This document shows, one piece after another, positions 1,378 to 38,989 of a DNA stretch of 64,000 nucleotides (within the stretch, counting starts at the first letter, position 1; each line of letters starts with the position of its first letter). A model generated the notes under the pieces. That model was not told where the DNA came from, ran no database searches, and saw nothing but the letters and a program-made list of their open reading frames with translations. The stretch spans positions 1,674,001-1,738,000 of the forward strand of contig NC_088802.1 in the NCBI RefSeq assembly GCF_011386835.1, read 5' to 3'. Source of the DNA: Chrysemys picta bellii (taxonomy: Eukaryota). The translations under genes and the position numbers were made by a program.

Positions 1378-1489
1378 CCACTTGCACTCTCCAGAGGGAC
1401 GTGTCTGTCACCTGGTTGAAGCAGTGTGCGGCCGTCAGGACCCACGAGTCAGAAACCAGGGACCCCCGGCACGAGGCGCCCGTTTTCCC
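1378..1489 (-). CDS. C2: C2 left exon 12 (catalytic His)
   Basis: 112 nt, [18 protein letters not shown]. Confidence 0.92.
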
Positions 1490-4400
1490 CTACGGACAGG
1501 GAGAGGGGCCAATGCAGGGAGGGGCCGTGGGAGGAGCACCCCCCCCAGCACTGCCAGGGGGCTCTGAACGGGACCCAGGTATCCAGGAAAGCGATCCCAG
1601 CCCCCGGGGAGGGAGGGAATGGGACAGTGGTTCCAGCTCCCCAGGGAAGGAGGGAACGGGACCCAGGTGTTTGGGACGGCGGTCCCAGCCCCCGGGGAGG
1701 GAGGGAACGGGACAGCGCCCCCCCAAGAGGGCTCAGCAGACAGACCCACCTTGATGACCACGTGCCAGGGGTTCCGCTGCTGGTGCGTGGCACTCTGCAA
1801 ATCATTCCCCAGCCCGCAGAGATCGTGGATGTTTTTGGTGTCTGTGCCATGCGGGGGGGGGAAGAGGGTTAGTCCTCGGGGTCACTGCTTGCCACGCCCC
1901 TCTGTGTGTCCCCCACACCCTAGGGTGACTGTCCTGGAAGACCCCCAAGCCCACATGGCCCCATAGTCCCAGCGGAGCCCTCCCCCAAACTGGTGCCCCA
2001 TGGGAAGAGACCCCCCCGCTGGCTCGGTTCCCTTCTGGGAGAGACGCCCCCACCCAGTTCCAGACATGGAGATGAGACGCCCCAGCCCTCCTCTTTGGCA
2101 GTTTGACTAGACAGCCTGCAAAGACGAGGCCCCTGTGCTGTGACAGGGGGACGCTGCGCCTGCTGTCGGCCTCAACGTACCCAGGACATCCTCGAACGCA
2201 GCCTTGAGATTCTGGCTGGAGTCCAACTTGAAGGCATGCCTCTCCCCTTCCTTCTTGGAAGCAATCTCATTAAGGCCACCCCAGTCCACCTCCTGCGTCC
2301 CAATCCCAAAGGCATAGATATCTAGGAGGCAAGTCAAGAAACTGCATGAGGGCACTGAGAATCTGAAGGGTTTGGAGCTGTTGTTGAGGCTGGAAGGTCA
2401 CTGGAGAGCCCTGTCCCTGGTAGTGTGGAGTCTACAACCAGCAGTGTGCCCAGAACCAATAATTAGGGCATTTTGGAACCCAGCAGTGCTTAGAAATGGT
2501 GTTGAGGCACCTAGAACCTGCGCTGATGCACCTAGAACAAATAGGGCAAATAGACCAGCAGCAAGGCACTAGGACTGGTACTGTGGTGCCTAGAATTGGC
2601 ACAGTGCCTAAAACCTATTACTAGGGCATAAGAACGGCCATACTTGGTCAGAGCAAAGGTCCATCTAGCCCAGTGTCCGGTCTTCTGACAGTGCCCAATG
2701 CCAGGTTCTTCAAAGGGAATGAACAGAAAAGGTAATCATCAAGTGAGCCATCCCCTGTTGCTCATTCCCAGCTTCTGACAGAGGACCTAGGACCATCTAG
2801 GACCTAATAATGCCTAGAATCAGTGTTGAGGTACCTAGAACCCAGAGTAGACGGAATCAGCTAGTGAGGAATAGGGTGCACAGAGGAACCTGGAAATTGT
2901 AGCATATAGATGCTAAAATTGAGTTATCATTATTCATACCTATAACTGGCACCTAGAATCAAGAACGCAGAAAACTTGGTAGCAAGATGAGCTACTAAAA
3001 AGTGTGGAACATCCCTCCCCCTGAACAAAGAAAAACGACCTTTTGGGTCAAAAAATTTCAGCGGGCAATGTTAAAACTGAAAAAATTGGCAAAAATTGAA
3101 AAATACCCAGAAACGTCTGAAGAAAATTCTTAATAAAAGCCTTTGTTGCTTTCATCAAAACTTTTTTGTGGGAAGAAAACTCATTTCATAGCCAGGTCTG
3201 GTCTTGGGAAAACAGAACAAGTGTAGTGGTACCTAGAACCAACGGTACAAATAACTTGGTGGTAAGCTACTGAGCTGCTTAGGATGGGTGTTGAAGCACC
3301 TAGAACCAGCAGTGGTAATATCTTCATAGAGGAGTACTATTGGGATACCCAGAAGAGATTAAATAACCTGTTAGGTAGCAGGACTAACACAGAGGGCATC
3401 CAGAATGTATGTAGACACATCTAGAACCAATGTTGCAAAGAACATGCTGCTGCCATGCCAACAGGTGATATTAAATCATCTAAAACCAACAGTACAAATA
3501 ACCTGTTGTGAAGGCACTGGGGTATACAGAGCTGATATAACACCAGGACAGAGTACACTTGGGCTTAAAGTGTCTGGTACCCCTGTTGAGGCATCTAAAG
3601 CCAAGAATATAAATAGAATACTGATGCGTCTAGAACTGGGAATTCCCAGATCCCTGAACTAGTTTTTAGGCACCTAGAACTCGTAACACCCAGATCCTGG
3701 CATTGCAGCGCCAAGGAAGATATTGACAAATCTAGAATGGGAAGTGCCAAGATCCTGGAACTGTAGCCACAGCCAAGTAATGAAGTGTTACGGGTTGGAT
3801 CACAGAAACCCCCTTGGGAGCGGTCACCCGATGTGCAAAGACTACCCCTGCTTCTGTTTTCCCTGCCAGCTCAGGACTCCAGCACCCTGTCTTGCTGAGC
3901 CAGACACTCCCGTCTGGCTCCAGACACAGACCCAGGGTCTGAATCACTTTCCCCAAAGCTGCAGGTTTACCTGAAAACAGCTCACAGAAGTGTGCTTGTC
4001 TTTAGCACTCGGATGCCCAACTCCCAGTGGGGTCTAAACCCAAATAAATCCGTTTTACCCTGTATAAAGCTTATGCAGGGCAAACTCATAAATTGTTCCC
4101 CCTCTATAACACTGATAGAGAGATATGCACAGCTGTTTGCTCCCTCAGGTATTAATACATACTCTGAGTAAATTACTAAATAAAAAGTGATTTTATTAAA
4201 TACGGACAGTAGGATTTAAGTGGTTCCAAGTAGTAACAGACAGAACAAAGTAAGTCACCAAGCAAAATAAAATAAAATACGCAAATCTATGCCTAATCAA
4301 ACTGAATACAGATAATCTCACCCTCAGAGATGCTTCAGTAAGCTTTTTCTCAGACTGGACACCTTCCAGGCCTGGGCACAATTCTTTCCCCTGGTACAGC

Positions 4401-7400
4401 TCTTGTTGCAGCTCAGGTGATAGCTAGGGGATTCCTCATGATGGCTCCTCTCCCCTTTGTGTTCTCTTCCACCCCTTTATATATCTTTTGCATAAGGCAG
4501 GAACCCTTTGTCCCTCTGGGTTTCCACCACCCCCCCTCACTAGAAAAGCACCAGGTTAAAGATGAATTCAGTTCAGGTGACATGATCACATGTCACTGAA
4601 AGACTTCATTGCTCACTTGCCAGCACACACATATACAGGGAGACTAATAGGTAAATACAGCCATCTGCAGACAATGGTCCTCGTTAATGGGAGTCATCAA
4701 GATTCCTAACCATCATTAATGGCCCACACTTCGCATAATTACAATAGGCCCTCAGAGTTACATTTTATATTTCTAGTTTTAGATACAAGAGTGGTACCTT
4801 TATACAAATGTGATGATCACACTCATTAGATTATAAGTTTTGTAATGATACCTTACAAGAGACCTTTTGCATGAATCATATTCCAGTTACATTATATTCA
4901 CTTATCATATTTTTATAAAACTATTCCAGTTACATTATATTCACTTCTTCTTATGTTTTTATAAAACCATACAGACTGCACAACGTCACATGAATCACCT
5001 AGAACCGGCATTAAGGCACCTAGAACAGGTAGATCACATCAATGAAGGACTGCAACTATCACTGGCATGTGGAATGGACCCAAGGGTGTTGGCAGACTCA
5101 CCTAGGTAGTCTTTCCTGTCTGGCTTGATCTCTAGGACCCCTTCTATCTTGTCTACTGCATCCTTGGGGGATTCGCCCATGTTGTATTTACCTGAAACAA
5201 CATCCTATGGGTTAGCAGATATGACCCATTCCCTGGCCCCAAGATAGGGGCCCTTTGACAAGGGGCTATGCAGTTGGGAAGCTTGACCTGCACCCACTGA
5301 GAGTGGGGATCAGATAACCCTTTTCCTGGCCCCCAAAGAATGGAACAGTCACTCCTCACCATCTGTCAGCACAATGATGGCATGCCGGATTTTCTTCCAC
5401 GCATCTGGCTTGCCCTGCCGGTCAAAGGACTGCTGCTGGAACAGAATCATGTTATACACCTCCAGCAGCGCCGCTCGGATGTTGGTTCCAGTCCCGTTGC
5501 CATGATCTGCAAAAGGATAAAATACCCCACATACCTAGAACTGGTGCTAAAGCACCTAGAGCCCAGGATATAGTGAAGCATCTGAAACCCATGTGGGGGA
5601 GCCTAGAGCCAGTAATGACAATAGCTAGAATAGATCTATCTAGAGCTGAATTCCAGAGGTGATGCGTGAGGGGGCATGTGGGATCACGTTCCTTCCTCCC
5701 CCCCAGATTTGCTGCTTGGCTTGGACAGAGCATGCTCACATGGACTGAGTATGCTCAGTAACACTGCTGAAGCCAGCTGCCCTTGCTCTGCCCCTTCCGC
5801 ATCAGCAGGCATGGGTCGTCTCTGCTGGTGTTGATGCATCTAAAGCCTTAAAGGAGGTGCGGCCATTGAGGCACCTAGAACCTATAATCCCCATGATGCA
5901 TGTTGAGGCATCTAGAACCAACAATGCCTGTGACTGGGGTTGAGGTGCCTAAAACCAATAGTGTCCACAAGTGATGCTAAATCATCAAGAACTGACAGTG
6001 CCCTGGACTAGTGTTGAGGCAACTAAAATTCTAGTGAGATTAAGGGCTGGTACTGAAGCACCTAGAACTTAACATTTCCTCCCACTCAATTTCACTCTGC
6101 ATTTTCCTTGGGTTGGGGAAATGAGTTCTCTTGAAGCACTAAATATATATATTTCCATCTGGGACTGTCTCTGTTTGCTCATATTGAATGCAATCAGGTC
6201 ACGATCACTGGTCTCTAGGCAACCACCAACTTGCAGTCCAGTGATCAATTCCTCTTTATCTGTCATAGTAAGATCCAAAATAGAGTTAGTTCATGGTGGG
6301 TGCGATAATTTCTGAGTTAGCAAGTTACATTCTATTATTTTTAGAAACCCTAATGATAGTTTATTACTGGCTTAACGAGACCACCACCGTCCATCTCCCA
6401 ATCTGAAAGCAGGTGTTGAGGCACCTAGAACCCAAGTAATATCCAGGGTCCTGAGGCACCTAATACAGGGTGTGAGTGGTATTGACAGCCCAAGACCCCC
6501 ATGCATTAGGGAGGCCCCGTGAAAAGGAAGCATGCAGGACCTTGAAAATTCATCCCCGTCTTTATCTTTCCGATAACCGCATCCGCGTCAGAAGCTTCGG
6601 GATCATAAATGGAAACGATTTTCTTGGGCTTGGTGGCGTAGGAGATCACAGCAAAGCTGGACGCTACTTCAAAGCTGGCAATCTGGAACGGGTGAGAGAT
6701 AGGGAGGGAGGAAGAGGAGAACAGCATATGAGAAAGAACAGGAAAGTGAGCTCTATCAATGAGAGACACCTAGACCCAGTGCTGAGGTGCCCAGAGCAGG
6801 TACTGAGGCACCTAAACCCAACACTGAGACACCTAGAATTTGCAGCACGTGTGGCTGGTATTGAAGAACCTAGAACCAAGGTGGCGATACCTAGAGCTTG
6901 CAATGTCTATAAGGTGTCATTGTAGGTAGAATCAGCATATGGGCACCTAGAGCTTGTGTGACGAACTGGGACTGTTCTTACTGTGGTCTTTGAATGCTGA
7001 CAGGGGAGTGTGGCTGGGATAGTCTGCATTGGGGGATGGGAGACGGCCCGAAGGAGAATACCTGAGCATGTAACATGAGAACCCAGGAAGGGGTTAGAGG
7101 CCAGGTGACACCTTTGCCCGGGAAACTGAACAAAGGCTGTGGGAGGGGTCGCTGAAGGGAGAGTTTCAGGAGCTGGCTGGTGACATGGCTGGGAGGCAGA
7201 CAGGGCTCTGACCTCCCAAGGGGGCTGTGGGGCTCTGGGACCCCAAGATGGACCTAACTGAGGGGATCCTGTTGTCTGTGCCTGCAAGACCTGTCTTGGA
7301 CTGTATTCCTGTTGTCTAAATAAACCTTCTGCTTTACTGGCTGGCTGAGAGTCAGGGTGAATCACAGGAAGCCGGGGGTGCAGGGCCCTGAGTCCCCCAC

Positions 7401-10400
7401 ACTCTGTGACAACCAGTGGCAGAGGTGGGATCTACTGCACCCCGTGGACAGCGCTTCCTGCAGTAAGTGACCAGGGAGCAGTAAAACGAAGGGGGATCAA
7501 CGGGGACCAGGTGGGCTGAAGAGTCAGAGAGAGACGGTTTCAGGGGGCGATTAACCCCTGGGAGTGTGTGACCAGAGAGAAGGACTGTTGCAGTAACAGG
7601 GTCTCCTGGGGGATCGCAGCGACTGGTCCCGGGGCGGCGGAGTCTGCAGCTCGACCCTGGCAGAGAGGGGGTGACCGAAGAAGGGCTGGCACACTAGGGG
7701 TCCCCCGGGAATGGTGGAAAGCAGAGAGCACAGGCCGGCGAGTGACCAGCCGGAGGATGGATGCTAAACGCCTTAAGAGCGACCTGGTGGAGCTGTGCGG
7801 GCAGAGGGGGCTGCGCATTGGGAGGTCCACCAAAGAACAGCTCATTGCCCGGCTGGAGGAGAGGGATCGCTTGGATGAACCAAGCCCTGTCCCAGAGGGA
7901 AGCCGCCCGGCGGATGCAGCGTGGGCCCCGGGGCCTGACCTGGCTGGGAGGGGTCAGACTGCTGCCGAGGACATCCCAAGACCCTGCCTACCTATACCTA
8001 GGGGAGGGGTTGGGGGAAGCCCAGCGAATACCGAGGGCACCCTGACCCCGGCAGCCAGCAGGGGATCGTCCCAGTGGAGCTCCCCGTCCCGGGAGCGGAT
8101 GCGACTGGAATATGACAGGGAGCTGAGACTGAAAGAGCTCGAGTTAAGGCAGCAAGAACTGAAGCAGGAGCGGGAAGAGAAGGAGAAACAACGTCAGCAT
8201 GAGCTGGAACTGGCCAGGCTGAGGAGCAGTGGGGCCCCAGCTGCGGTGAGTGAGGGGGGACCCAAGACTGCAAAGAGCTTTGATCAGTGCTTCCTGGCCC
8301 AGCGTAAGGAGGGGGAGGACATGGATACCTTCCTGATGGCCTTTGAGAATACCTGTGAGCTGCTCCAGGTTGACCCTGCAGACAGGCTCCAGTTTCTCAT
8401 CCCCTCACTGGACCCCACAGCCAGGGAGGTGTACAGCCGACTGAAAGGGGCGGAGACAGGGGACTACGAACTGTTCAAAAAGGCCCTGCTCCACGAGTTT
8501 GGGCTGACCCCTGAGACGTACCGGAAAAGGTTCCGGAGTCAGCGTAAAACCCGTGAGGTCACATACCTACAACTAGCCAACCGGGCGCAGGGGTATGCCC
8601 GCAAGTGGACAGCTGGGGCCCAAACTAAAGAGAACCAGCTTGACCTATTCGTACTGGAGCACGTGTATGAGCAGTGCCCATCCGACCTGAGGCGATGGTT
8701 GATGGACCAAAAACCAGAGAACCCGCAGCACGCAGGCCAGCTGGCCGACGAGTTTGTGAACAGTTGGGCAGGGGATAACAGGGAGAAGTCCCAAAGGAAC
8801 GGACCCGCCACAACGCAGAGAGAGAGTCACCATGGGACCTCCCAGCGAGGAAATATGGAGAACCCCCACCAAAGGGGAACATCCAGCATCAGGTCCATCC
8901 GACCCGCTCGAGGGGACCCACGGGACATGGGCTGCTATCACTGTGACCAGAAAGGCCACATACGGGCCCAGTGCCCCAGGCTCAGGGACAGACTGAGCGG
9001 AACCAACCCACAGAGGGTTGACTGGGTAGAGACCCAGCCGGGTGAAGGGCAGCATTCCCAGGAAAGGGGGGCTGGCAGAGTACCACCTGCTAAGGAGGGA
9101 GAAGAGCTCCAGGCCAGCTCCTCTGGGGGGCTGGATGCTCCAGACTCAGGGTTTTTGGTTTATACGGTGGGCGCGGGGCTGTCCCTCCGGAGAGAGTACC
9201 TTGTTCCCCTGGAGGTGGATGTGAGGAAGGTCAATGGATACTGGGATACGGGCGCAGAGGTCACGCTGGCCCGGCCCGAGGTGGTGGCCCCAGATCAGGT
9301 GGTGCCCAACACCTACCTGACCCTGATGGGGGTGAGTGGGACCCCAGTCAAAGTGCCCATGGCAAGGGTACACCTGAAGTGGGGGGCCAAGGAGGGCCCC
9401 AAGGACGTGGATGTACACCCGTATTTGCCCACTGAGGTGTTGATGGGGGGGAGACCTGGAGGGCTGGCCAAGTAACCCCCAGGGTGCCCTGGTCGTGACC
9501 CGTAGTCAGAGCCGGCGAGGGGCACTGCACCCAGGAGGCAGCTGGTGGTACCCCAGAAGTATCGCCGCCAGCTGCTGTGCCGGGCCCATGACATTCCCCT
9601 CTCAGGGCACCAGGGAACCTGGCGTACCCAGCAGAGGCTACGGAGCTTTTACTGGCCTGGGGTCTTTGTTACTGTCCGACAGTACTGCGGATCCTGTGAC
9701 CCCTGTCAGAGGGGGAGGAAGGCCCGGGACAAGGGGAAAACGGCTTTAGGACCCTTGCCCAGCATAGAGGATCCTTTCCGGAGGGTGGCCAAGGTTAAAA
9801 GGGCGGCTCTAAACCAAGAGAGCCCAAAGCACAGACCTCCAGACTGGAGCACTGGGAGAAGACCACAGCCCAGTTGGAGCCCCAGAAGTATTGGGGTGGG
9901 AAAAGGGCACAGGCCGCATAAACCTTCCCACATGCAAACTGCGAGTGCCATCGAGCAACCCCGACCTAAGGGGGGGCGTGAAACTGGAGGGGCCTGGTGT
10001 AATTCTCACCAAGGAATGGGAGGGATGCGGGGGCATCCATGGGAACGGGGGTAGGTTCGAACTTCCCCGGGTCACTGGCTGAAGTGACCCCGCTCAGTTC
10101 GGTCTCGAAGGGGGGAGATGTGACGAACTGGGACTGTTCTTACTGTGGTCTGTGAATGCTGACAGGGGAGTGTGGCTAGGATGGTCTGCTTTGGGGGATG
10201 GGAGTCTGCCCGAAGGCGAATACCTGAGCGTGTAACATGAGAACCCAGGAAGGGGTTGGAGGCCAGGTGACACCTTGGCCCGGGAAACTGAACAAAGGCT
10301 GTGGGAGGGGTCGCTGAAGGGAGAGTTTCAGGAGCTGGCTGATGACATGGCTGGGAGGCAGACAGGGCTCTGACCTCCCAATGGGGCTGGGGTGCCCTGG

Positions 10401-13377
10401 GACCCCAAGATGGACCTAACTGAGGGGGTTCCTGTTGTCTGTGCCTGCAAGACCTGTCTTGGACTGTGTTCCTGTCGTCTAAATAAACCTTCTGCTTTAC
10501 TGGCTGGCTGAGAGTCAGGGTGAATCGCAGGGAGCCGGGGGTGCAGGGCCTGGTGTCCCCCCACACTCCACGACAGCTTGCAGCAGCAAGATTCCTAGAA
10601 CTGGGGTACAGGCCCCTACAACTTGCAGCACTCATTGTTGGCACTGAAATACCTAGATCAGATGTGGGAGAAGCTACAATTTGCAGTGCCCATGGCTACT
10701 ATTGAGATACCTGGAACAGGCATGCAGGCATCTAGAACCTGTAGCATTCATGGCTGGCCTGTGGTATGTAGCACCTGCACACAAGCCTCTAGAACTTGCA
10801 GAGTCCATGGCTGGTGTTGATGTACCTAGAACCAGCATGCATGTGCACAGAACTTGTGTCATCCAGGTCTGGCAGTGAAGAACCTTTGAGCTGACATACA
10901 AGGACCTAGAACTTGCAGCATCCACAACAGACATTGAGGTGCCCCGTACTATTGTAGACACCCCTAGAAATCGCAGTGGCCATGGCTGGTGTTGAGGCGC
11001 TTAGAACCAATGCTGAAACATAGTCCCTGACTCACCTGGTCCACAATGTTCTCCACCCATTCCTTGAAGATCTGGAAGCTTTCTCTGTTGATACTCTTTG
11101 AGGAGTCCACCAGCAGGTAGACGTTAATGAAGCTGTCCTTGCTAAGAATGAGCCTGTGGCCTAGGAACGTTGCTGGGCAGGGGAACCGGGAGAGGTCATC
11201 CGCAACATCCTGGGGAGAGAGATCCCCCCGTGTGCCCCACCTCCCTTACACCCCTTAGTACCAACCCACACTCCCTCAATTCCCTCCTCTCCCCACTGCC
11301 TCTTGCCACCCCCATCTCTTGGACTTCCTCCCCCACTGCATCCTCATCGCCCTGCAGAGACCACCCTCTCCCCTTGGTCCCCACCCCGTCAGAATCCCCC
11401 CAGGGCCTGCCTCCCCCCACACTCCCAGGCAGACTCACGTGGCTTTATGATGGAGGCATTGAGGCTGGAGGAGGCCGAGGAGCTGGCCAGGCCCAAGACG
11501 TTGGAGAAGGAGGCTCCGAACTCGGCCCCGACGTCCTCCACCCGGTCGTAGGAGAAAGGGGCTGCGCGGGCAGGGGAAAGCGGGGTCCCTGTTAGCCAGG
11601 CAGCAGGGAACATGGCGCCGGAGGTGGGGGGGAGACGGAGGGTCAAGGAGGGATGGGGAGGGGGACCTTGGGCAGGTGGGGAGGGTGTTGTGGAAGGTGA
11701 TGAAGGAGCCCCAGGGGTGGGGGAACCTGGAGGGGGTGGAGGGCCAGAAGGGGGAGCCCTGGGCCAGGGATGGTGGTGGGGGTGGGGGGGAATCACTCAC
11801 CTCTGCAGCTGGGCTCGGCCCCCGACCACTCCCCAGCCTCAGTGCAGACGCGCTGCGCGGACCCCACCAGAGACAGCCCTGCCTGGCAGCGGTAGGAGAC
11901 CTGCTCGCCCAGCCGGTACCGGCTGCCACTCTTCGTCGTCCCGGCCGGCACCCCGGGGTTGGGGCATTGCTCAGCTGGGGGGAGAGAGAGGTGAGAACGG
12001 CCCCCAAATCCCTCAGTCTCCAACCCCCCGGGACCCACTTCCACCCCTGAGCTCCCTGGGGACATGGGGGTGCTTGGGGCATACAGGAGGTATGGGGGCT
12101 CTCAGGGGCGCAGGGAAATATGGGGATACTGGGGAAATGGGGGGCTCTCAGGGATGCAATGGGGGCTCAGGGAGCTCTCGGGGGTGCAGGGGGATATGGG
12201 GCAGAGGGGAAATGGGGGGGCTCTCAGGGGATATGGGGGCACAGGGGGATGGGGCTCTCAGGGAGATATGGGGGCGCAGGGGGATAAGGGGGTCTCACCT
12301 CCATCGTCGCAGGCGGGGGTGCCCCCGTCCCAGTGCCCGTTCTCCTGGCAGGTGCGCTGGGCCGGCCCCCGCAGCATGTACCCGTCCAGGCACTCGAAGG
12401 TCAGGATGCTGCCCACGGGGTAGGACGCCTGGCGCGGCTGGAACGAGCCGTTCTCGAACGCCAGTTGCGCCGGGCAGCGGATCTCTGAAACCAGAACAGA
12501 ACCAGAGTGGAGAGAACCCAGGAGTCCTGGCTCCTGGCCCCCATGCCCCACTAGACCCTACTCCCCTCCCAGAGCCGGGGATTGAACCCAGGAGTCCTGG
12601 CCCCCAACCCCCACTCCGCTCTAAACACTAGCCCCCACTCCCCTCCCAGAGAACCCCGGTGTCCGGGCACCCCGTACCTTGGCAGAGAGGCTGGGGGAAG
12701 ACGGAGCCGGTGGGGGTGCGGAGCGTGGTCCAGCGCCCGTCATCCTGGCAGAGACGGCTGCCCAGCGGGTAGGGGTAGAAGCCCGGGGGGCAGGAGTAGG
12801 TGAGCACACTGCCCGGGCGGTACCCGTCCGACAGGGCGAACGTGCCATTGCGGATGGCCACGTCCTGGCCACAGGAGGGCGCTGCCTCCTCGGGGGGCTG
12901 CGCCCAGGCACCTGGGGGACACGGGGAACAAGCAGGAATGAACGCATGGCCCAAGGGAGGAGAGAGAGAGATTCGGGGGGAAAGGGAGAGAGCGAATGAG
13001 ACAAAAAGAGCAGAGATGAGAGAGAAGGAATGGAAAAAACAAGAGAGAGAGAGAGGGGAGGAGAGCCCGAGAAAGAAAGAAAGAAAGAAAGGACATACGG
13101 CGTGCAAGAGGGGAAGGAAAAGGGGAGAGGGATGGAGGCAGAAGCCGGGAGCGAGAGAGGGAGGGAGGGGCTGCAGGATGGGGGGACAGGAAAAGGGGAA
13201 CAAGAAACAGGCCCAATGAACGAGTGCAGGGAGGACATTTCGCCCCCCTGCCCCCCCCGCATGCAGCTCGACCTCCCCGAACTCCTTCCGCGCCCTCGCT
13301 TGCCCCGTCCCTGGGGGGCTCCATCCCCCCCCCGTACCTGGGCAGAGGGCGAGCAGCAGAAGGGCGCAGAGGGCCAT
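1378..13377 (-). CDS. C2: Complement C2, left copy, exons 1-12 (exon 13 onward lies outside window)
   Basis: 12 GT-AG exons in continuous frame: signal peptide [14 protein letters not shown], three CCP modules, vWFA (DSSKS, TDG), start of protease (TAAHC). Confidence 0.9.
1750..1841 (-). CDS. C2: C2 left exon 11
   Basis: 92 nt, [24 protein letters not shown]. Confidence 0.9.
2181..2321 (-). CDS. C2: C2 left exon 10
   Basis: 141 nt, DIYAFGIG...[10 protein letters not shown]. Confidence 0.92.
2625..2780 (-). mobile_element. CR1-type LINE 3-prime UTR fragment; mirror ~46497-46652
   Basis: Recognised ...GGACCTTTGGTCTGACC..GTATGGCCGTTCTTATG tail. Confidence 0.7.
3786..4990 (-). mobile_element. 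Solo LTR ~1.2 kb in C2 intron 9 (left copy)
   Basis: TG...CA, TSD TGAAG/TGAAT; TATA and AATAAA on minus. Confidence 0.88.
5102..5191 (-). CDS. C2: C2 left exon 9
   Basis: 90 nt, [12 protein letters not shown]...DYL. Confidence 0.9.
5360..5506 (-). CDS. C2: C2 left exon 8
   Basis: 147 nt, DHGNGTGTN...[11 protein letters not shown]. Confidence 0.92.
6110..6410 (-). mobile_element. CR1 LINE ORF2 fragment (endonuclease end/linker); mirror ~42865-43170
   Basis: Translates [31 protein letters not shown], matching CR1 ..LDL..T..EELI....V...LG.SDH..I.F motif. Confidence 0.7.
6541..6682 (-). CDS. C2: C2 left exon 7
   Basis: 142 nt, [16 protein letters not shown]; weak donor GTCCTG. Confidence 0.85.
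7757..9475 (+). CDS. Retrotransposon Gag-protease ORF (SAP-like N-terminus, SCAN-like capsid CTD, CCHC knuckle, DTG protease), ~572 aa from ATG 7757
   Basis: ETYRKRFR...[21 protein letters not shown]-like; [14 protein letters not shown]; YWDTGAEVT. Confidence 0.85.
   Translation: MDAKRLKSDLVELCGQRGLRIGRSTKEQLIARLEERDRLDEPSPVPEGSRPADAAWAPGPDLAGRGQTAAEDIPRPCLPIPRGGVGGSPANTEGTLTPAASRGSSQWSSPSRERMRLEYDRELRLKELELRQQELKQEREEKEKQRQHELELARLRSSGAPAAVSEGGPKTAKSFDQCFLAQRKEGEDMDTFLMAFENTCELLQVDPADRLQFLIPSLDPTAREVYSRLKGAETGDYELFKKALLHEFGLTPETYRKRFRSQRKTREVTYLQLANRAQGYARKWTAGAQTKENQLDLFVLEHVYEQCPSDLRRWLMDQKPENPQHAGQLADEFVNSWAGDNREKSQRNGPATTQRESHHGTSQRGNMENPHQRGTSSIRSIRPARGDPRDMGCYHCDQKGHIRAQCPRLRDRLSGTNPQRVDWVETQPGEGQHSQERGAGRVPPAKEGEELQASSSGGLDAPDSGFLVYTVGAGLSLRREYLVPLEVDVRKVNGYWDTGAEVTLARPEVVAPDQVVPNTYLTLMGVSGTPVKVPMARVHLKWGAKEGPKDVDVHPYLPTEVLMGGRPGGLAK
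9540..9790 (+). pseudogene. Integrase zinc-binding (HHCC) remnant directly after protease
   Basis: [20 protein letters not shown]....FYWPG....CGSCDPCQR; no core, RT or RNase H follows. Confidence 0.85.
11036..11172 (-). CDS. C2: C2 left exon 6 (activation site, vWFA start)
   Basis: 137 nt, [27 protein letters not shown]. Confidence 0.92.
11439..11561 (-). CDS. C2: C2 left exon 5 (linker)
   Basis: 123 nt, [18 protein letters not shown]. Confidence 0.88.
11801..11974 (-). CDS. C2: C2 left exon 4 (CCP3)
   Basis: 174 nt, CPNPGVPAG...WSGAEPSCR. Confidence 0.92.
12299..12484 (-). CDS. C2: C2 left exon 3 (CCP2)
   Basis: 186 nt, [11 protein letters not shown]...[11 protein letters not shown]. Confidence 0.92.
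12678..12911 (-). CDS. C2: C2 left exon 2 (CCP1)
   Basis: AG/GT bounded, 234 nt, [10 protein letters not shown]...CPPGFYP...C. Confidence 0.9.
13338..13377 (-). CDS. C2: C2 left exon 1 (signal peptide, 40 nt)
   Basis: ccaccATGG context, phase-1 GT donor; 6 nt shorter than right copy. Confidence 0.88.
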
Positions 13378-17861: not shown

Positions 17862-19151
17862 ATGGCGTCGGGCGTGGAGCTGCTGCGGTTCCAGCTGCCG
17901 GGCCACGAGGCGGCCACGCTGCGCAACATGAACCAGCTACGCTCGGAGGAGCGGTTCTGCGACGTGACCATCGTGGCCGAGAGCCTGAAGTTCCGGGGGC
18001 ACAAGGTGATCCTGGCGGCCTGCTCCCCGTTCCTGCGCGACCAGTTCCTGCTGAACCCCTCCTCCGAGCTGCAGGTCTCCCTCATGCACAGCGCCAAGAT
18101 CGTAGCCGACCTGCTGCTCTCCTGCTACACCGGCGCCCTGGAGTTCGCCGTGCGCGACATCGTCAACTACCTGACGGCCGCCAGCTACCTGCAGATGGAG
18201 CACGTGGTGGAGAAGTGCCGCAACGCCCTCTCCCAGTTCATCCAGCCCCAGATTGGCCTCAAGGAGGACGCCCCCCCGGCCAAGGGGGGCGCCCCCCGGG
18301 CCCCGGCCGGCCCCTCGCCCCAGGAGCGGGCCCGCCACCGCCTCCCAGCCTGGCCCCTCAAGCTGGAGCTGGAGGAACTGGAGCTGAAGGACGAGGAGGA
18401 GGAAGAGGACTACGGGGACGACGACGGCGTCTCCGACATCTGCATCGTCAAGGTGGAGTCGGCCCTGGAGGTGGCCCAGCGGCAGAAGAAGCAGCAGGCG
18501 GCGGCGGCCTGGGCCAAGGAGGGGTCCCCGCCGCCCGGCTGGGCCAAGGAGCAGCAGCAGGAGGCCCAGGTGAACTCCACGGTGGCCGAGGGGCCGGTGC
18601 CGCCCGAGCCGGCCCCGCAGGGCGTGGTCAAGGCCTGCTACAGCCTGGCGGAGGACGCCGAGGGCGAGGGGCTGCTCATCTTCCCGGGGGGCACCTACGC
18701 GGAGGAGGGCGGCGGGCGCCCCGCGGCCGGGCGCGGGGGGCCGGCGGGCCCCCACCCGCTGCGCAGCATCCGCTGCGCCAAGTGCGAGGAGGCCTTCCAG
18801 GGGGTGGAGAAGCTGGTGTTCCACATGCGGGCGCAGCACTTCATCTTCATGTGCCCGCGCTGCGGCAAGCAGTTTAACCACAGCAGCAACCTCAACCGGC
18901 ACATGAACGTGCACCGGGGCGTGAAGTCCCACTCCTGCGCCGTCTGCGGCAAGAGCTTCACCCAGAAGTCCACCCTGCACGACCACATGAACCTGCACAG
19001 CGGGCAGCGCCCCTACCGCTGCTCCTACTGCGACGTGCGCTTCGCCCACAAGCCCGCCATCCGCCGCCACCTCAAGGAGCAGCACGGCAAGACCACCGCC
19101 GAGAACGTGCTGGAGGCCAGCGTCTCCGAGATCAACGTCCTGCTGCCCTAG
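17862..19151 (+). CDS. ZBTB12: Zinc finger and BTB domain protein 12, copy 1 (single coding exon, 429 aa)
   Basis: [30 protein letters not shown]-terminus plus four C2H2 fingers; recognised as ZBTB12. Confidence 0.95.
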
Positions 19152-20610: not shown

Positions 20611-20749
20611 GTGGGGGAGGGGCGAAGGGACCCAGGCGTCCGGGGGGGGGCGAGTCTCTGTGAGACCGGGACCAATGGGGGGGAGGGATCACTCCCCCGC
20701 CCCCCCCGCACAGACCGGGGGGCTGCGGGTCCGGGGGCCGGTCTGGGGG

Positions 20750-23700
20750 CAGTAGGGGGGTGACTGGGGGGCTGTGGGCGGGTTGCTGGGGGCAGTGGGG
20801 GGATTGTTGGCTGGGGGGCCGGGGATGGGGGCAGTAGGGGGGTGACTGGGGGGCTGTGGGCGGGTTGCTGGGGGGCAGTGGGGGGGTTGTTGGCTGGGGG
20901 GCCGGGCTGGGGGCAGGAGGGGGCTGGCTGGGGGCGCTGGGCTGGGGGGCAGTGGGGGGATTGTTGGCTGGGGGGCTGGGCTGGGGGCAGTAGGGGGGGG
21001 CTGTGGGCGGGTTGCTGGGGGGCAGTGGGGGGGTTGTCTGGGGGGCCGGGCTGGGGGGCAGTAGGGGGGTGGCTGGGAGCGGGTTGCTGGGGGGCAGTGG
21101 GGGGGTTGTCTGGGGGGCCGGGCTGGGGGCAGTAGGGGGGTGACTGGGGGGCTGGGGGCGGGTTGCTGGGGGGCAGTGGGGGGTGGTTGGCTGGGGGGCC
21201 GGGCTGGGGGCAGTAGGGGGTGACTGGGGGGCTGGGGGCGGGTTGCTGGGGGGCAGTGGGGGGATTGTTGGCTGGGGGGCTGGGCTGGGGGCAGTAGGGG
21301 GGTGGCTGGGAGCGGGTTGCTGGGGGACAGTGGGGGGGTTGTTGGCTGGAGGGCCGGGCTGGGGGCAGTAGGGGGGGGATGGGGGCGGGTTGCTGGGGGG
21401 CAGTGGGGGGGTTGTCTGGGGGGCCGGGCTGGGGGCAGTAGGGGGGTGACTGGGGGGGCTGGGGGCGGGGTTGCTGGGGGACAGTGGGGGGGGTTGTTGG
21501 CTGGAGGGACGGGCTGGGGCAGTAGGGGGGTGACTGGGGGGCTGTGGGCGGGTTGCTGGGGGGCAGTGGGGGGGGTTGTTGGCTGGGGGGCCGGCTGGGG
21601 GCAGTAGGGGGGTGACTGGGGGGCTGGGGGCGGGTTGCTGGGGGGCAGTGGGGGGATTGTTGGCTGGGGGGCGGGGCTGGGGGCAGGAGGGGGGTGTGAC
21701 TGGGGGCTGGGGGCGGGTTGCTGGGGGGCAGTGGGGGGATTGTTGGCTGGGGGGCGGGGCTGGGGGCAGGAGGGGGGTGACTGGGGGGCTGTGGGCGGGT
21801 TGCTGGGGGGCAGTGGGGGGATTGTTGGCTGGGGGGGCCGGGATGGGGGCAGTAGGGGGGTGACTGGGGGGCTGTGGGCGGGTTGCTGGGGGGCAGTGGG
21901 GGGGTTGTTGGCTGGGGGGCCGGGATGGGGGCAGTAGGGGGGTGACTGGGGGGCTGTGGGCGGGTTGCTGGGGGGCAGTGGGGGGATTGTTGGCTGGGGG
22001 GCCGGGCTGGGGGCAGTAGGGGGGTGGCTGGGAGCGGGTTGCTGGGGGGCAGTGGGGGGGTTGTCTGGGGGGCCGGGCTGGGGGCAGTAGGGGGGTGACT
22101 GGGGGGCTGGGGGCGGGTTGCTGGGGGGCAGTGGGGGGTGGTTGGCTGGGGGGCCGGGCTGGGGGCAGTAGGGGGTGACTGGGGGCTGGGGGCGGGGTTG
22201 CTGGGGGGCAGTGGGGGGGATTGTTGGCTGGGGGGCTGGGCTGGGGGCAGTAGGGGGGTGGCTGGGAGCGGGTTGCTGGGGGACAGTGGGGGGGTTGTTG
22301 GCTGGAGGGCCGGGCTGGGGGGCAGTAGGGGGGGGGATGGGGGCGGGTTGCTGGGGGGCAGTGGGGGGGTTGTCTGGGGGGCCGGGCTGGGGGCAGTAGG
22401 GGGGTGACTGGGGGGCTGGGGGCGGGTTGCTGGGGGACAGTGGGGGGGGTTGTTGGCTGGAGGGACGGGCTGGGGGCAGTAGGGGGGTGACTGGGGGGGC
22501 TGTGGGCGGGTTGCTGGGGGGCAGTGGGGGGGGTTGTTGGCTGGGGGGCCGGGCTGGGGGCAGTAGGGGGGTGACTGGGGGGCTGGGGGCGGGTTGCTGG
22601 GGGGCAGTGGGGGGGATTGTTGGCTGGGGGCGGGGCTGGGGGCAGGAGGGGGGTGACTGGGGGCTGGGGGCGGGTTGCTGGGGGCAGTGGGGGGATTGTT
22701 GGCTGGGGGGCGGGGCTGGGGGCAGGAGGGGGGGGGCTGGGGGCGGGTTGCTGGGGGGCAGTGGGGGGATTGTTGGCTGGGGGGCGGGGCTGGGGGCAGG
22801 AGGGGGGTGACTGGGGGCTGGGGGCGGGTTGCTGGGGGGCAGTGGAGGGGTTGTTGGCTGGGGGGCCGGGCTGGGGGCAGGAGGGGGGTGACTGGGGGCT
22901 GGGGGCGGGTTGCTGGGGGCAGTGGAGGGGTTGTTGGCTGGGGGGCCGGGCTGGGGGCAGTAGGGGGGTGACTGGGGGGCTGGGGGCGGGTTGCTGGGGG
23001 GCAGTGGGGGGGGTTGTTGGCTGGGGGGCCGGGCTGGGGGCAGTAGGGGGGTGACTGGGGGGCTGGGGGCGGGTTGCTGGGGGGCAGTGGGGGGATTGTT
23101 GGCTGGGGGGCGGGGCTGGGGGCAGGAGGGGGGTGACTGGGGGCTGGGGGCGGGTTGCTGGGGGGCAGTGGGGGGATTGTTGGCTGGGGGGCGGGGCTGG
23201 GGGCAGGAGGGGGGTGACTGGGGGCTGGGGGCGGGTTGCTGGGGGGCAGTGGAGGGGTTGTTGGCTGGGGGGCCGGGCTGGGGGCAGGAGGGGGGTGACT
23301 GGGGGCTGGGGCGGGTTGCTGGGGGGGCAGTGGAGGGGTTGTTGGCTGGGGGGCCGGGCTGGGGGCAGTAGGGGGGTGACTGGGGGGCTGGGGGCGGGTT
23401 GCTGGGGGGCAGTGGGGGGGGTTGTTGGCTGGGGGGCCGGGCTGGGGGCAGTAGGGGGGTGACTGGGGGGCTGGGGGCGGGTTGCTGGGGGGCAGTGGGG
23501 GGATTGTTGGCTGGGGGGCGGGGCTGGGGGCAGGAGGGGGGTGACTGGGGGCTGGGGGCGGGTTGCTGGGGGGCAGTGGAGGGGTTGTTGGCTGGGGGGC
23601 CGGGCTGGGGGCAGTAGGGGGGTGACTGGGGGGCTGTGGGCGGGTTGCTGGGGGGCAGTGGAGGGGTTGTTGGCTGGGGGCAGTAGGGGGGTGACTGGGG

Positions 23701-26700
23701 GGCTGGGGGGAGGTTGCTGGGGGGCAGTGGGGGGGTTGTTGGCTGGGGGGCTGGGCTGGGGGCAGTAGGGGGGTGACTGGGGGGCTGGGGGGGGGTTGCT
23801 GGGGGGCAGTGGAGGGGTTGTTGGCTGGAGGGCCGGGCTGGGGGCAGGAGGGGGCTGGCTGGGGGCGCTGGGCTGGGGGACAGTGGGGGGGTTGTTGGAT
23901 GGGGGGCCGGGCTGGGGGCAGTAGGGGGGTGACTGGGGGCTGGGGGTGGGTTGCTGGGGGGCAGTGGGGGGGTTGTTGGCTGGGGGGCCGGGCTGGGGGC
24001 AGTAGGGGGGTGACTGGGGGCTGGGGGTGGGTTGCTGGGGGGCAGTGGGGGGGTTGTTGGCTGGGGGGCCGGGCTGGGGGCAGTAGGGGGGGTGACTGGG
24101 GGCTGGGGGTGGGTTGCTGGGGGGCAGTGGGGGGGATTGTTGGCTGGGGGGCCGGGCTGGGGGCAGTAGGGGGGTGACTGGGGGCTGGGGGTGGGTTGCT
24201 GGGGGGCAGTGGGGGGGTTGTTGCTGGAGGGCCGGGCTGGGGGCAGGAGGGGGCTGGCTGGGGGCGCTGGGCTGGGGGGCAGTGGGGGGGTTGTTGGCTG
24301 GGGGGCTGGGCTGGGGGCAGTAGGGGGATGACTGGGGGGCTGGGGGCGGGTTGCTGGGGGGCAGTGGGGGGGTTGTTGTCTGGAGGGACGGGCTGGGGGC
24401 AGTAGGGGGGTGACTGGGGGGCTGGGGGCGGGTTGCTGGGGGGCAGTGGGGGGATTGTTGGCTGGGGGGCCGGGCTGGGGGCAGTAGGGGGATGACTGGG
24501 GGGCTGTGGGCGGGTTGCTGGGGGGCAGTGGGGGGGTTGTTGGCTGGGGGGCCGGGCTGGGGGCAGTAGGGTGGTGACTGGGGGGCTGTGGGCGGGTTGC
24601 TGGGGAGCAGTGGGGGGGTTGTTGGCTGGGGGGCCGGGCTGGGGGTCAGTAGGGTGGTGACTGGGGGGCTGGGGGCGGGTTGCTGGGGGGCAGTGGGGGG
24701 GTTGTTGGCTGGGGGAAGTAGAGGGTGACTGGGGGTCTGGGGGCAGGTTGCTGGGGGGCAGTGGGGGGGTTGTTGGCTGGAGGGACGGGCTGGGGGCAGT
24801 AGGGGGGTGACTGGGGGGCTGTGGGCGGGTTGCTGGGGGGCAGTGGGGGGGTTGTTGGCTGGGGGGCCGGGCTGGGGGCAGTAGGGGGTGACTGGGGGCT
24901 GGGGGCGGGTTTGCTGGGGGGCAGTGGGGGGGTTGTTGGCTGGGGGGCCGGGTTGGGGGGTGACTGGGGAGCTGTGGGCGGGTTGCTGGGGGGCAGTGGG
25001 GGGTTTTTGGCTGGGGGGCCGGTCTGGGGGCAGTAGGGGGGTGACTGGGGGGCTGTGGGCGGGTTGCTGGGGGGCAGTGGGGGGATTGTTGGCTGGGGGG
25101 CCGGGCTGGGGGCAGTAGGGGGTGACTGGGGGGCTGGGGGCGGGTTGCTTGGGGGCAGTGGGGGAATTGTTGGCTGGGGGGCCGGTCTGGGGGCAGTAGG
25201 GGGGTGACTGGGGGCTGGGGGCGGGTTGCTGGGGGGCAGTGGGGGGATTGTTGGCTGGGGGGCCGGGCTGGGGGCAGGAGGGGGGTGACTGGGGGGCTGT
25301 CGGCGGGTTGCTGGGGGGCAGTGGGGGGATTGTTGGCTGGGGGGCTGGGCTGGGGGCAGGAGGGGGGTGACTGGGGGGCTGTCGGCGGGTTGCTGGGGGG
25401 CAGTGGGGGGGTTGTTGGCTGGAGGTCCGGGCTGGGGGCAGTAGGGGGGGGATGGGGGCGGGTTGCTGGGGGGCAGTGGGGGGTTGTTGGCTGGGGGGCC
25501 GGGCTGGGGGCAGGAAGGGGGTGACTGGGGGGCTGGGGGCAGGTTGCTGGGGGGGCAGTGGGGGGGTTGTTGGCTGGGGGCCGGGCTGGGGGCAGTAGGG
25601 GGGTGACTGGGGGGCTGTGGGCGGGTTGCTGGGGGGCAGTGGGGGGGTTGTTGGCTGGGGGGCCGGGCTGGGGGCAGGAAGGGGGTGACTGGGGGGCTGG
25701 GGGCAGGTTGCTGGGGGGCAGTGGGGGGGTTGTTGGCTGGGGGCCGGGCTGGGGGCAGTAGGGGGGTGACTGGGGGCGGGTTGCTGGGGGGGCAGTGGGG
25801 GGATTGTTGGCTGGGGGGCCGGGCTGGGGGCAGTAGGGGGTGACTGGGGGCTGGGGGCAGGTTGCTGGGGGGCAGTGGGGGGTTGTTGGCTGGGGGCCGG
25901 GCTGGGGGCAGTAGGGGGGTGACTGGGGGGCTGGGGGCGGGTTGCTGGGGGGCAGTGGGGGGGTTGTTGGCTGGGGGCAGTAGGGGGTGACTGGGGGTCT
26001 GGGGGCAGGTTGCTGGGGGGCAGTGGGGGGGTTGTTGGCTGGAGGGACGGGCTGGGGGCAGTAGGGGGGTGACTGGGGGGCTGTGGGCGGGTTGCTGGGG
26101 GGCAGTGGGGGGTTGTTGGCTGGGGGCCGGGCTGGGGGCAGTAGGGGGTGACTGGGGGCTGGGGGCGGGTTGCTGGGGGGCAGTGGGGGGGGTTGTTGGC
26201 TGGGGGCCGGGCTGGGGGGTGACAGGGGAGCTGTGGGCGGGGTTGCTGGGGGGCAGTGGGGGGATTGTTGGCTGGGGGGCCGGGCTGGGGGCAGGAGGGG
26301 GTGACTGGGGGCTGGGGGCGGGTTTGCTGGGGGGCAGTGGGGGGGTTGGCTGGGGGGCCGGGCTTGGGGCAGGAGGGGGCTGGCTGGGGGGGCTGGGGGC
26401 GGGTTGCTGGGGGGCAGTGGGGGGGTTGGCTGGGGGGCCGGGCTGGGGGCAGTAGGGGGGTGACTGGGGGGCTGTGGGCGGGTTGCTGGGGGGCAGTGGG
26501 GGATTGTTGGCTGGGGGGACGGGCTGGGGGCAGTAGGGGGGTGACTGGGGGGCTGGGGTCGGGTGATTGGGGGCAGTGGGGGGTTGTTGTCTGGGGGCAG
26601 TAGGGGGTGACTGGGGGTCTGGGGGCAGGTTGCTGGGGAGCAGTGGGCGGGTTGTTGGCTGGGGGGCCGGGCTGGGGGCAGTAGGGGGGTGACTGAGGGG

Positions 26701-29700
26701 CTGTGGGCGGGTGCTGGGGGGCAGTGGGGGGATTGTTGTCTGGGGGGCTGGGCTGGGGGCAGTAGGGGGGTGACTGGGGGGCTGGGGGCGGGTTGCTGGG
26801 GGGGCAGTGGGGGGGTTGTTGGCTGGGGGGCCGGGCTGGGGGCAGTAGGGGGTGACTGGGGGGCTGGGGGCAGGTTTGCTGGGGGGCAGTGGGGGGATTG
26901 TTGGCTGGGGGGACGGGCTGGGGGCAGTAGGGGGGTGACTGGGGGGCTGGGGTCGGGTGACTGGGGGGCAGTGGGGGGTTGTTGTCTGGGGGCAGTAGGG
27001 GGTGACTGGGGGTCTGGGGGCAGGTTGCTGGGGAGCAGTGGGCGGGTTGTTGGCTGGGGGGCCGGGCTGGGGGCAGTAGGGGGGTGACTGAGGGCTGTGG
27101 GCGGGTTGCTGGGGGGCAGTGGGGGGGTTGTTGGCTGGGGGGCCGGGCTGGGGGCAGTAGGGGGTGACTGGGGGCTGGGGGCGGGTTGCTGGGGGGCAGT
27201 GGGGGGGTTGTTGGCTGGGGGGCCGGGCTGGGGGGTGACTGGGGAGCTGTGGGCGGGTTGCTGGGGGGCAGTGGGGGGGTTGTTGGCTGGGGGGCCGGGC
27301 TGGGGGCAGTAGGGGGTGACTGGGGGCTGGGGGCAGGTTGCTGGGGGGCAGTGGGGGGGTTGTTGGCTGGGGGGCCGGCTGGGGGCAGTAGGGGGGTGAC
27401 TGGGGGGCTGGGGGCGGGTTGCTGGGGGGCAGTGGGGGGGTTGTTGGCTGGGGGCAGTAGGGGGTGACTGGGGGTCTGGGGGCAGGTTGCTGGGGGGCAG
27501 TGGGGGGGTTGTTGGCTGGAGGGACGGGCTGGGGGCAGTAGGGGGGGTGACTGGGGGGCTGTGGGCGGGTTGCTGGGGGGCAGTGGGGGGGTTGTTGGCT
27601 GGGGGGCCGGGCTGGGGGCAGTAGGGGGTGACTGGGGGCTGGGGCGGGGTTGCTGGGGGGCAGTGGGGGGGTTGTTGGCTGGGGGGCCGGGCTGGGGGGT
27701 GACTGGGGAGCTGTGGGCGGGTTGCTGGGGGGCAGTGGGGGGATTGTTGGCTGGGGGGCCGGGCTGGGGGCAGGAGGGGGTGACTGGGGGCTGGGGGCGG
27801 GTTGCTGGGGGGCAGTGGGGGGGTTGTTGGCTGGGGGGCCGGGCTGGGGGGTGACTGGGGAGCTGTGGGCGGGTTGCTGGGGGGCAGTGGGGGTTTTTTG
27901 GCTGGGGGGCCGGTCTGGGGGCAGTAGGGGGGTGACTGGGGGGCTGGGGGCGGGTTGCTGGGGGGCAGTGGGGGGATTGTTGGCTGGGGGGCCGGGCTGG
28001 GGGCAGGAGGGGGTGACTGGGGGCTGGGGGCGGGTTGCTGGGGGGCAGTGGGGGGGTTGGCTGGGGGGCCGGGCTGGGGGCAGGAGGGGGCTGGCTGGGG
28101 GGCTGGGGGCGGGTTGCTGGGGGGCAGTGGGGGGGTTGGCTGGGGGGCCGGGCTGGGGGCAGTAGGGGGGTGACTGGGGGGCTGTGGGCGGGTTGCTGGG
28201 GGGCAGTGGGGGGATTGTTGGCTGGGGGGACGGGCTGGGGGCAGTAGGGGGGTGACTGGGGGGCTGGGGTCGGGTGACTGGGGGGCAGTGGGGGGTTGTT
28301 GTCTGGGGGCAGTAGGGGGTGACTGGGGGTCTGGGGGCAGGTTGCTGGGGAGCAGTGGGCGGGTTGTTGGCTGGGGGGCCGGGCTGGGGGCAGTAGGGGG
28401 GTGACTGAGGGCTGTGGGCGGGTTGCTGGGGGGCAGTGGGGGGGTTGTTGGCTGGGGGGCCGGGCTGGGGGCAGTAGGGGGTGACTGGGGGCTGGGGGCG
28501 GGTTGCTGGGGGCAGTGGGGGGGTTGTTGGCTGGGGGGCCGGGCTGGGGGGTGACTGGGGAGCTGTGGGCGGTTGCTGGGGGGCAGTGGGGGGGTTGTTG
28601 GCTGGGGGGCCGGGCTGGGGGCAGTAGGGGGTGACTGGGGGCTGGGGGCAGGTTGCTGGGGGGCAGTGGGGGGGTTGTTGGCTGGGGGGCCGGGGGCTGG
28701 GGCAGTAGGGGGGTGACTGGGGGGCTGGGGGCGGGTTGCTGGGGGGCAGTGGGGGGGTTGTTGGCTGGGGGCAGTAGGGGGTGACTGGGGGTCTGGGGGC
28801 AGGTTGCTGGGGGGCAGTGGGGGGGTTGTTGGCTGGAGGGACGGCTGGGGGCAGTAGGGGGGTGACTGGGGGGCTGTGGGCGGGTTGCTGGGGGGCAGTG
28901 GGGGGGTTGTTGGCTGGGGGGCCGGGCTGGGGGCAGTAGGGGGTGACTGGGGGCTGGGGGCGGGTTGCTGGGGGGCAGTGGGGGGGTTGTTGGCTGGGGG
29001 GCCGGGCTGGGGGGTGACTGGGGAGCTGTGGGCGGGTTGCTGGGGGGCAGTGGGGGGATTGTTGGCTGGGGGGCCGGGCTGGGGGCAGGAGGGGGTGACT
29101 GGGGGCTGGGGGCGGGTTGCTGGGGGGCAGTGGGGGGGTTGTTGGCTGGGGGGGCCGGGCTGGGGGGTGACTGGGAGCTGTGGGCGGGTTGCTGGGGGGC
29201 AGTGGGGGTTTTTTGGCTGGGGGGCCGGTCTGGGGGCAGTAGGGGGGTGACTGGGGGGCTGGGGGCGGGTTGCTGGGGGCAGTGGGGGGATTGTTGGCTG
29301 GGGGGCCGGGCTGGGGGCAGGAGGGGGTGACTGGGGGCTGGGGGCGGGTTGCTGGGGGGCAGTGGGGGGGTTGGCTGGGGGCCGGGCTGGGGGCAGGAGG
29401 GGGCTGGCTGGGGCTGGGGGCGGGTTGCTGGGGGGCAGTGGGGGGTTGGCTGGGGGGCCGGGCTGGGGGCAGTAGGGGGGTGACTGGGGGGCTGTGGGCG
29501 GGTTGCTGGGGGGCAGTGGGGGGATTGTTGGCTGGGGGGCCGGGCTGGGGGCAGGAGGGGGCTGGCTGGGGGGGCTGGGGGCGGGTTGCTGGGGGGCAGT
29601 GGGGGGTGGTTGGCTGGGGGGCCGGGCTGGGGGCAGGAGGGGGGTGACTGGGGGCTGGGGGCGGGTTGCTGGGGGGGCAGTGGGGGGGTTGGCTGGGGGG

Positions 29701-38943: not shown

Positions 38944-38989
38944 ATGGCCCCCTCCCTCTGCACCCTTCTGCTGCTCGCCCTCTGCCCAG
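38944..38989 (+). CDS. C2: C2 right exon 1
   Basis: 46 nt [15 protein letters not shown], ccaccATGG context, GT donor. Confidence 0.9.

Follow-up and report, generated by a model that had tools for sequence, protein, structure and literature searches.

Textbooks present complement C2 and factor B as single-copy zymogens whose activation depends on one arginine, and C2 is cut by C1s and MASP-2 after Arg243. The subject of this study is a stretch of 64,000 nucleotides from the painted turtle Chrysemys picta bellii (GCA_011386835.2, CM062329.1:1,674,001-1,738,000; 63.6% G+C), referred to below as the window, in which two C2 genes occupy the arms of an inverted duplication, a third copy lying outside it. 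One of the three, here called the left copy, is intact and transcribed, and encodes His as the P1 residue of its activation site, where its two sister copies keep Arg. Its last exons lie beyond position 1 of the window and were read from an overlapping locus, L001, which covers window positions 1-23377 without mismatch. The three genes and the elements of the activation site are as follows.

1378-13377, minus strand: left C2-like gene, exons 1-12, with the ATG at 13377; exons 13-18 lie beyond window position 1
13377-13338, 12911-12678, 12484-12299, 11974-11801, 11561-11439 and 11172-11036, minus strand: left exons 1-6
6682-6541, 5506-5360, 5191-5102, 2321-2181, 1841-1750 and 1489-1378, minus strand: left exons 7-12
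11036-11172, minus strand: left exon 6, encoding the scissile loop, the start of the von Willebrand factor A (vWA) domain and the DSSKS motif of MIDAS (metal ion-dependent adhesion site)
11156-11158, minus strand: codon CAC (GTG on the plus strand) for His258, P1 of the activation site of the left C2-like protein
11153-11155, minus strand: codon AGG for Arg259 of the left copy, next after His258
38944-53597, plus strand: right C2 gene, 18 exons, all junctions GT-AG, Arg at P1
41143-41279, plus strand: right exon 6, homologous to left exon 6
41157-41159, plus strand: codon CGC for the P1 Arg of the right copy
CM062329.1:1,634,906-1,654,024 (L002), outside the window: third C2-like gene (XP_065420104-108), 18 exons, Arg at P1

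The original prediction, made from the letters of the window, had read CAC in the left copy and CGC in the right at these positions and had aligned the site with the cleavage site of human C2 by its spacing. Both codons were re-read as described, and the alignment agrees with two further observations: in a phmmer comparison of the left protein with Protein Data Bank (PDB) chains, the turtle segment ‘flgHrlil’ aligned without a gap to ‘slgRkiqi’ of human C2, placing His258 opposite Arg243, and the solved large-fragment chains 2odp_A and 9u61_B (509 aa) start at the residue aligned to Arg259. In a cryo-EM paper on C4b2 the P1 residue of the human scissile bond is Arg243 (PMC12847986), which, taken with the gap-free alignment, puts His258 at P1 by homology and not by spacing alone.

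Apart from this residue the left gene is that of a canonical C2. Exons 1-12 were said in the same prediction to be open, with the DSSKS and TDG motifs of the MIDAS and the catalytic His in place, and so we found them, with GT-AG at every junction; the encoded 539 residues are 100% identical to XP_065420109.1 (P0013), a protein of 769 amino acids that NCBI names ‘complement C2-like’. Threaded through L001, this protein matches exactly over 18 exons with GT-AG at 17 of 17 introns (34 splice sites), so that lesions in exons 13-18, a part of the gene that the prediction could not see, are rejected. Against the sister copies the left gene shows a single indel, a deletion of 6 bp that keeps the frame and removes two codons of the signal peptide, and none of the hallmarks of a pseudogene that were looked for (frameshift, premature stop, lost splice site, absence of transcription) was found in the left gene. 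Pfam profiles identify three Sushi repeats (4e-32), a VWA domain (3e-24) and a Trypsin domain (1e-26) in P0013. The MIDAS motifs, DSSKS (residue 275) and LTDG (residue 392), align to human DCSQS and LTDG, and the catalytic triad motifs TAAHC, YDYDVSL and GESGG, the Asp and Ser of which are encoded by exons outside the window (L001), align to human TAAHC, GDDIALL and GESGG. The left copy thus shares with human C2 (PDB 2ODP, 2I6Q and 9QJ4, with its Arg243-Lys244 site) the order of three complement control protein (CCP) modules, linker, vWA domain with MIDAS and serine protease, the distance between scissile bond and N-x-Y-L-L strand, the triad and MIDAS, and a position in major histocompatibility complex (MHC) class III next to ZBTB12, where a ZBTB12-like open reading frame (ORF) lies divergently upstream of both the left and right C2 genes, as in Caretta. 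It differs from the human protein in having His and not Arg at P1, in a linker nine residues longer, and in changes at residues conserved from squamates to human (R298Q, G401E and the loss of an N-x-S sequon through S486L). Factor B, considered as an alternative identity for the left gene, is rejected, since phmmer scores favour C2 (238 and 314 bits to human C2 vs 165 and 204 to factor B) and a distinct turtle factor B exists (P0021), the CFB gene adjoining C2 in Caretta (L004) and Terrapene (L003). Its architecture and motifs, its similarity and its position, all read from sequence, make the left gene a C2 gene that lacks one defining feature, the basic P1 residue, which the right and third copies retain.

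The gene is transcribed and correctly spliced, and the His codon is present in RNA as well as in DNA. Contigs from two RNA runs of separate studies (X1 and X3) and from two DNA runs under two other organism labels (X25 and X29) were placed on window positions 10850-12950, and the assignment of short words to the left copy is possible because its exon 6 differs from the right one at 12 of 137 bases, which makes left exon-6 31-mers copy-specific; such 31-mers occur in runs that belong to four RNA and several DNA studies. The X1 and X3 contigs contain exons only, with joins 11172 to 11439, 11561 to 11801 and 11974 to 12299 and CT..AC ends. These joins coincide exactly with the minus-strand exon borders that had been predicted and thus mark spliced RNA, and transcripts carrying the His codon are present among them, the X3 contig running across the joint of exons 5 and 6 into that codon. 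At 11156-11158 all four runs (X1, X3, X25, X29) read CAC, and no other letter was seen. The X1 contig differs from the window over 11062-11172 at a single position, 11140 (T>C, Lys264 to Glu); Glu264 recurs in DNA run X25, so that residue 264 varies, as does residue 298 (window 11037), which is Arg in the left-type contig of X29 vs Gln298 in the window, His258 being constant in all four. The X25 contig, from a run under another organism label, combines His258 and Gln298 with the ancestral Val268 and Val280, from which it follows that His258 is older than V268I and V280I and occurs beyond the reference animal. One and the same RNA run yielded left-type contigs and contigs of other types, and contig depths are not a measure by which the expression of the genes can be ranked.

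A His at P1 is a rare state in this family. The activation site reads Gly-Arg-Arg in all nine other turtle species compared, cryptodires and pleurodires alike, the aligned column holds Arg in six of six squamates, and the codon is CGC in both sister copies of the painted turtle genome. An exhaustive search with phmmer gave 150 sequences, each representing a cluster at 50% identity; 36 of them are C2/factor B-like across the activation segment, and the automatic alignment of these 36 gave at P1 Arg in 27, Lys in three, Gly in two and a gap in four. Five of the six odd cases were inspected by eye: two have Arg, in one case displaced by a column, two have Lys, and P0178 stays unclear. This brings the basic P1 residues, Arg or Lys, to 32 of 36, with three representatives unclear, one lacking a basic residue and His in none. 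The only representative without a basic P1 is P0150, with Gly-Gly at the aligned P1-P1′ positions, a natural member of the C2/factor B family that has also lost the activation Arg, the loss being therefore not unique to the turtle copy. P0150 differs, however, in its altered MIDAS (DTSKR), its length of 593 amino acids and its identity of about 38%, whereas the turtle left copy is otherwise canonical; to judge by its sequence, P0150 may be a family member in which both activation and metal binding were lost.

The sister copies are close relatives of the left gene, with proteins 94-96% identical to its own, the same 18-exon structure and a place in the same cluster, and they keep Leu/Val-Gly-Arg-Arg where the left copy has His at P1. 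Downstream of the left gene, 11 kb away in gap-free sequence, comes the third copy, followed by a choline-transporter-like gene. Among relatives, the Caretta locus (L004) contains only one C2 gene, with factor B after it, and the 26-kb contig available from Terrapene (L003) has one C2 followed by a factor B-like gene, with no second C2 seen on it; the inverted neighbour there was tried as a second C2 copy and rejected, being factor B-like. Similarity among the three painted turtle copies is mosaic, which points to gene conversion. Exon 6 is the most divergent exon between left and right (12 of 137 nt, vs 0-3 differences in the other full-length exons), and the flanking introns are uneven, intron 4 (11562-11800) differing by 8.4% and intron 5 by 1.5%. 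Positive selection on exon 6 was considered and is unsupported, as synonymous and non-synonymous differences are both raised and intron 4 is equally divergent, a pattern that patchy gene conversion fits better. A protein from an older assembly, XP_023968822.1 (P0017), has a fourth version of exon 6, and this version, together with the uneven divergence of exon 6 and introns 4 and 5, suggests patchy gene conversion or else further copies or alleles.

The history of the left copy was followed in codon alignments that set the three painted turtle genes beside those of Terrapene, Platysternon and Caretta. Synonymous divergence (dS) between pairs of copies is 0.040-0.050, vs 0.063-0.083 to Terrapene, and the pairwise ratio of non-synonymous to synonymous divergence (dN/dS) is 0.60-0.71 among the copies vs 0.28-0.44 between species, the partial Platysternon model being left out. 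In the tree the three copies cluster weakly (63%), and the two halves of the gene disagree, the 5′ half grouping left with third (87%) and the 3′ half left with right (95%), again as expected from gene conversion; in both halves the left copy has the longest terminal branch. Polarised with outgroups, the left lineage carries 15 non-synonymous and nine synonymous changes. CpG transitions make up 15 of these 24 substitutions, six of the changes turn Arg into Gln or His, and the P1 change, CGC to CAC, is itself a CpG transition.

Where these changes fall was read from a deeper protein alignment of nine turtles and six squamates, in which a site was called invariant if it is the same in all turtles and in at least five of the six squamates, as holds for 38.7% of positions. 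Polarised missense changes of the left lineage hit invariant sites in seven of 14 cases, indistinguishable from this background (p=0.42), as against one of 23 in the other two copies (p=0.0002 vs background; Fisher test of left vs others, p=0.002), which indicates that changes in the other copies have been filtered by purifying selection and those in the left copy largely have not. The seven are R178Q, R258H, V280I, R298Q, S486L, E615K and R673Q, and they are spread over CCP3, the scissile loop, the vWA domain near the MIDAS, the linker between vWA and protease, and the protease domain, sparing no functional module. In addition, G401E alters the conserved NMGGSPK motif. S486L (window 1798-1800, left exon 11) removes the N-x-S sequon N-D-S, which every turtle and squamate examined retains and to which N-M-S corresponds in human C2; R673Q, by contrast, is probably harmless, Gln being the residue found in human C2.

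The setting of the two genes of the window is a head-to-head inverted repeat of a ZBTB12-C2 block, with arms at about 1-20420 and 32255-49245 that are 92-97% identical in BLAST blocks, each containing a ZBTB12-like ORF and a C2 gene transcribed divergently.

17862-19151, plus strand: ZBTB12-like ORF of 429 amino acids in the left arm, upstream of the left C2 gene
33643-34932, minus strand: second ZBTB12-like ORF, in the right arm
20733-31754, no strand: G-rich satellite of 11 kb, about 136 copies of units of about 81 bp, at the symmetry centre of the inverted duplication
31755-32254, no strand: gap of 500 N, directly after the satellite

The two ZBTB12-like ORFs differ at four of 1290 nt and one amino acid, far below the divergence of the surrounding arms, in which left and right C2 introns differ by 0.6-8.4% with many indels. 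An insertion of about 2.7 kb (about 7404-10119) lies in intron 6 of the left copy and is absent from the right.

These observations can be assembled into a reading to which we give about an even chance, namely that the left gene is a young, expressed and redundant C2 paralogue, evolving as a whole under relaxed constraint, whose canonical activation by C1s and MASP-2 would be impaired. A CpG transition would have replaced the P1 Arg of the bond at which C2 is cut to supply the C4b2 convertase with its active arm. The S2 pocket of C1s is small, and the residues that this enzyme prefers are Gly at P2 and Leu at P3 (PMC4166353). If C1s and MASP-2 depend on a P1 Arg and work best with a small residue at P2, Leu-Gly-His in the canonical register would be a poor substrate, as would Gly-His-Arg one residue further on. 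With both registers poor, activation of the left copy is probably slow or absent, and such a loss in the left copy would be tolerated because two sister copies keep Leu-Gly-Arg. The gene may then be caught in early functional decay, redundant and hypomorphic and yet not a pseudogene by any structural criterion, a description that we hold with neither more nor less confidence than doubt. Several observations pull the other way. The reading frame, the 34 splice sites, the MIDAS and the triad are untouched and the gene is transcribed, whereas full neutrality would predict, as a rough estimate that depends on the assumed indel rate, about two to four stops, splice losses or frameshifts alongside 15 missense changes; that none is present speaks mildly (p roughly 0.03-0.1 by our estimate) for some remaining selection to keep the protein intact. 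The branch-wise omega of the left copy, about 0.5 from 24 changes, differs significantly neither from 1 (p=0.09) nor from the background of 0.33 (p=0.19), and gene conversion among the copies blurs estimates of this kind. The His allele is common to samples under three other organism labels and has thus persisted for some time, and the specificity of the turtle C1s and MASP-2 is assumed from the human enzymes.

That persistence would be expected if the left copy were kept by selection as an activation-resistant decoy, which would still bind C4b by way of CCP1-3 and the MIDAS, would yield no active convertase and would in this way damp the classical and lectin pathways. Engineered non-cleavable factor B or C2 can act as proconvertase traps or dominant-negative inhibitors, in which the proenzyme binds C3b or C4b and is not activated, and these constructs needed extra mutations raising affinity to inhibit well. 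The turtle protein resembles them in the removal of the P1 Arg and differs in that no affinity-raising changes were identified in it (a literature search for engineered non-cleavable or dominant-negative factor B returned no relevant paper). A decoy would also account for an expressed gene with intact ORF, splice sites, MIDAS and triad, for the lack of any disabling mutation despite 15 missense changes, and for a His allele that spans organism labels and predates V268I and V280I, and a change at P1 need not disturb folding or C4b binding, as the human loop is free and disordered (PMC12847986). It fits poorly with R178Q in CCP3 and with V280I, R298Q and G401E in the vWA domain by the MIDAS, which strike the parts that a decoy should preserve, and with a spread over conserved and variable sites that matches random mutation; moreover, C4b binding by a proenzyme that simply resists cleavage is reversible, and such a protein would compete no more strongly than its abundance allows. 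We therefore regard selection for a decoy as unlikely, and it is more doubtful still that the left copy is a natural competitive brake on C4b2 convertase assembly, a regulator born from a convertase zymogen. About as improbable as the decoy, in our view, is that the left copy is still an ordinary C2 cut at its dibasic site after Arg259 (His-Arg259 | Leu), or by another protease, to leave a large fragment one residue shorter that still forms a convertase. Arg259 (AGG) is indeed retained, as are the triad and MIDAS, and since residues 234-250 of the human scissile loop are disordered and exposed in the proconvertase (PMC12847986), a shift by one residue would be sterically reachable and a slow cut possible. 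Such a cut, however, would place His at P2 and Gly at P3 against the C1s preference for Gly and Leu and its small S2 pocket (PMC4166353). Human C2 and nearly all turtle C2 proteins adhere strictly to Leu-Gly-Arg, and were the second Arg enough, the first would not have stayed invariant for about 200 My; several other conserved residues have, besides, also changed in the left copy.

Two readings would place the anomaly in the assembly. The arms meet at a satellite and a gap of 500 N, the ZBTB12 copies differ at only four of 1290 nt, and Q298/R298 and K264/E264 vary between samples, all of which might be expected if left and right were divergent haplotypes of a single ZBTB12-C2 block misplaced across the gap, with His as a null-like allele. 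We give this little credence: the left and third copies stand 11 kb apart in gap-free sequence, which implies at least two C2 loci on one haplotype; the intron divergence, the indels and the 2.7-kb insertion confined to the left copy far exceed ordinary heterozygosity; contigs with left-specific and with ancestral letters come from the same runs; and left-type exon-6 words recur across the four RNA and several DNA studies. An error of sequencing or assembly at the P1 base, conceivable for a single base in a GC-rich and repeat-rich region next to a gap, was rejected, for independent RNA and DNA contigs of four studies give the same codon, and it now has almost no claim on the data. The original prediction had offered three readings with no preference among them, namely the decoy, a cut one residue later, and an early pseudogene or null-like allele. 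Part of the last survives in the reading of relaxed constraint, in that missense changes no longer avoid conserved sites, and part does not, for the gene is intact and expressed. Two outcomes that the prediction had named as contradicting it did not occur, the reads giving CAC and not CGC, and the gene being expressed and free of lesions in exons 13-18.

What is at stake is a vertebrate with three copies of C2, one of them full length and transcribed without the activation Arg. The gene model is already in NCBI, the gene itself being known, and a literature search found no paper on the multiplication of C2 in turtles or on a substitution of P1 by His. If the left protein is made, it would be a natural experiment on how strictly C1s and MASP-2 require the P1 Arg in a native substrate, and a natural test of whether an uncleavable C2 damps the pathway. 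If the gene is merely decaying, it would show the earliest phase of gene death following a duplication, at which CpG transitions strip conserved Arg residues while frame, splicing and transcription are still untouched. Under either reading the label ‘complement C2-like’ hides a copy that is not to be assumed functional, and we rate the interest of the case as moderate overall, high if the left protein proves to be a natural convertase brake and modest if it is the decay of a spare copy, as the pattern of substitutions suggests.

Some minor features of the cluster complete the description. The right copy has a run of seven G at 53513-53519, vs six G in the left and third copies, and the extra G shifts the last eight or so codons and adds a tail of 17 residues; it also lacks one GAG (Glu) codon that the other two have, and the extra base and missing codon may be a true lesion or come from a homopolymer error in the assembly. 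Factor B exons were looked for up to 10 kb downstream of the right C2 gene (window 53600-64000) and none was found, whereas factor B follows C2 by 1.8 kb in Caretta, and the same interval of the window contains many tandem repeats and long proline-rich open frames. The insertion in left intron 6 carries the following frame.

7568-9475, plus strand: ORF of 635 amino acids with a SCAN domain (Pfam 6.6e-11)

Another called gene, with SCAN and integrase domains, lies in left intron 15 (L001:26373-28967).

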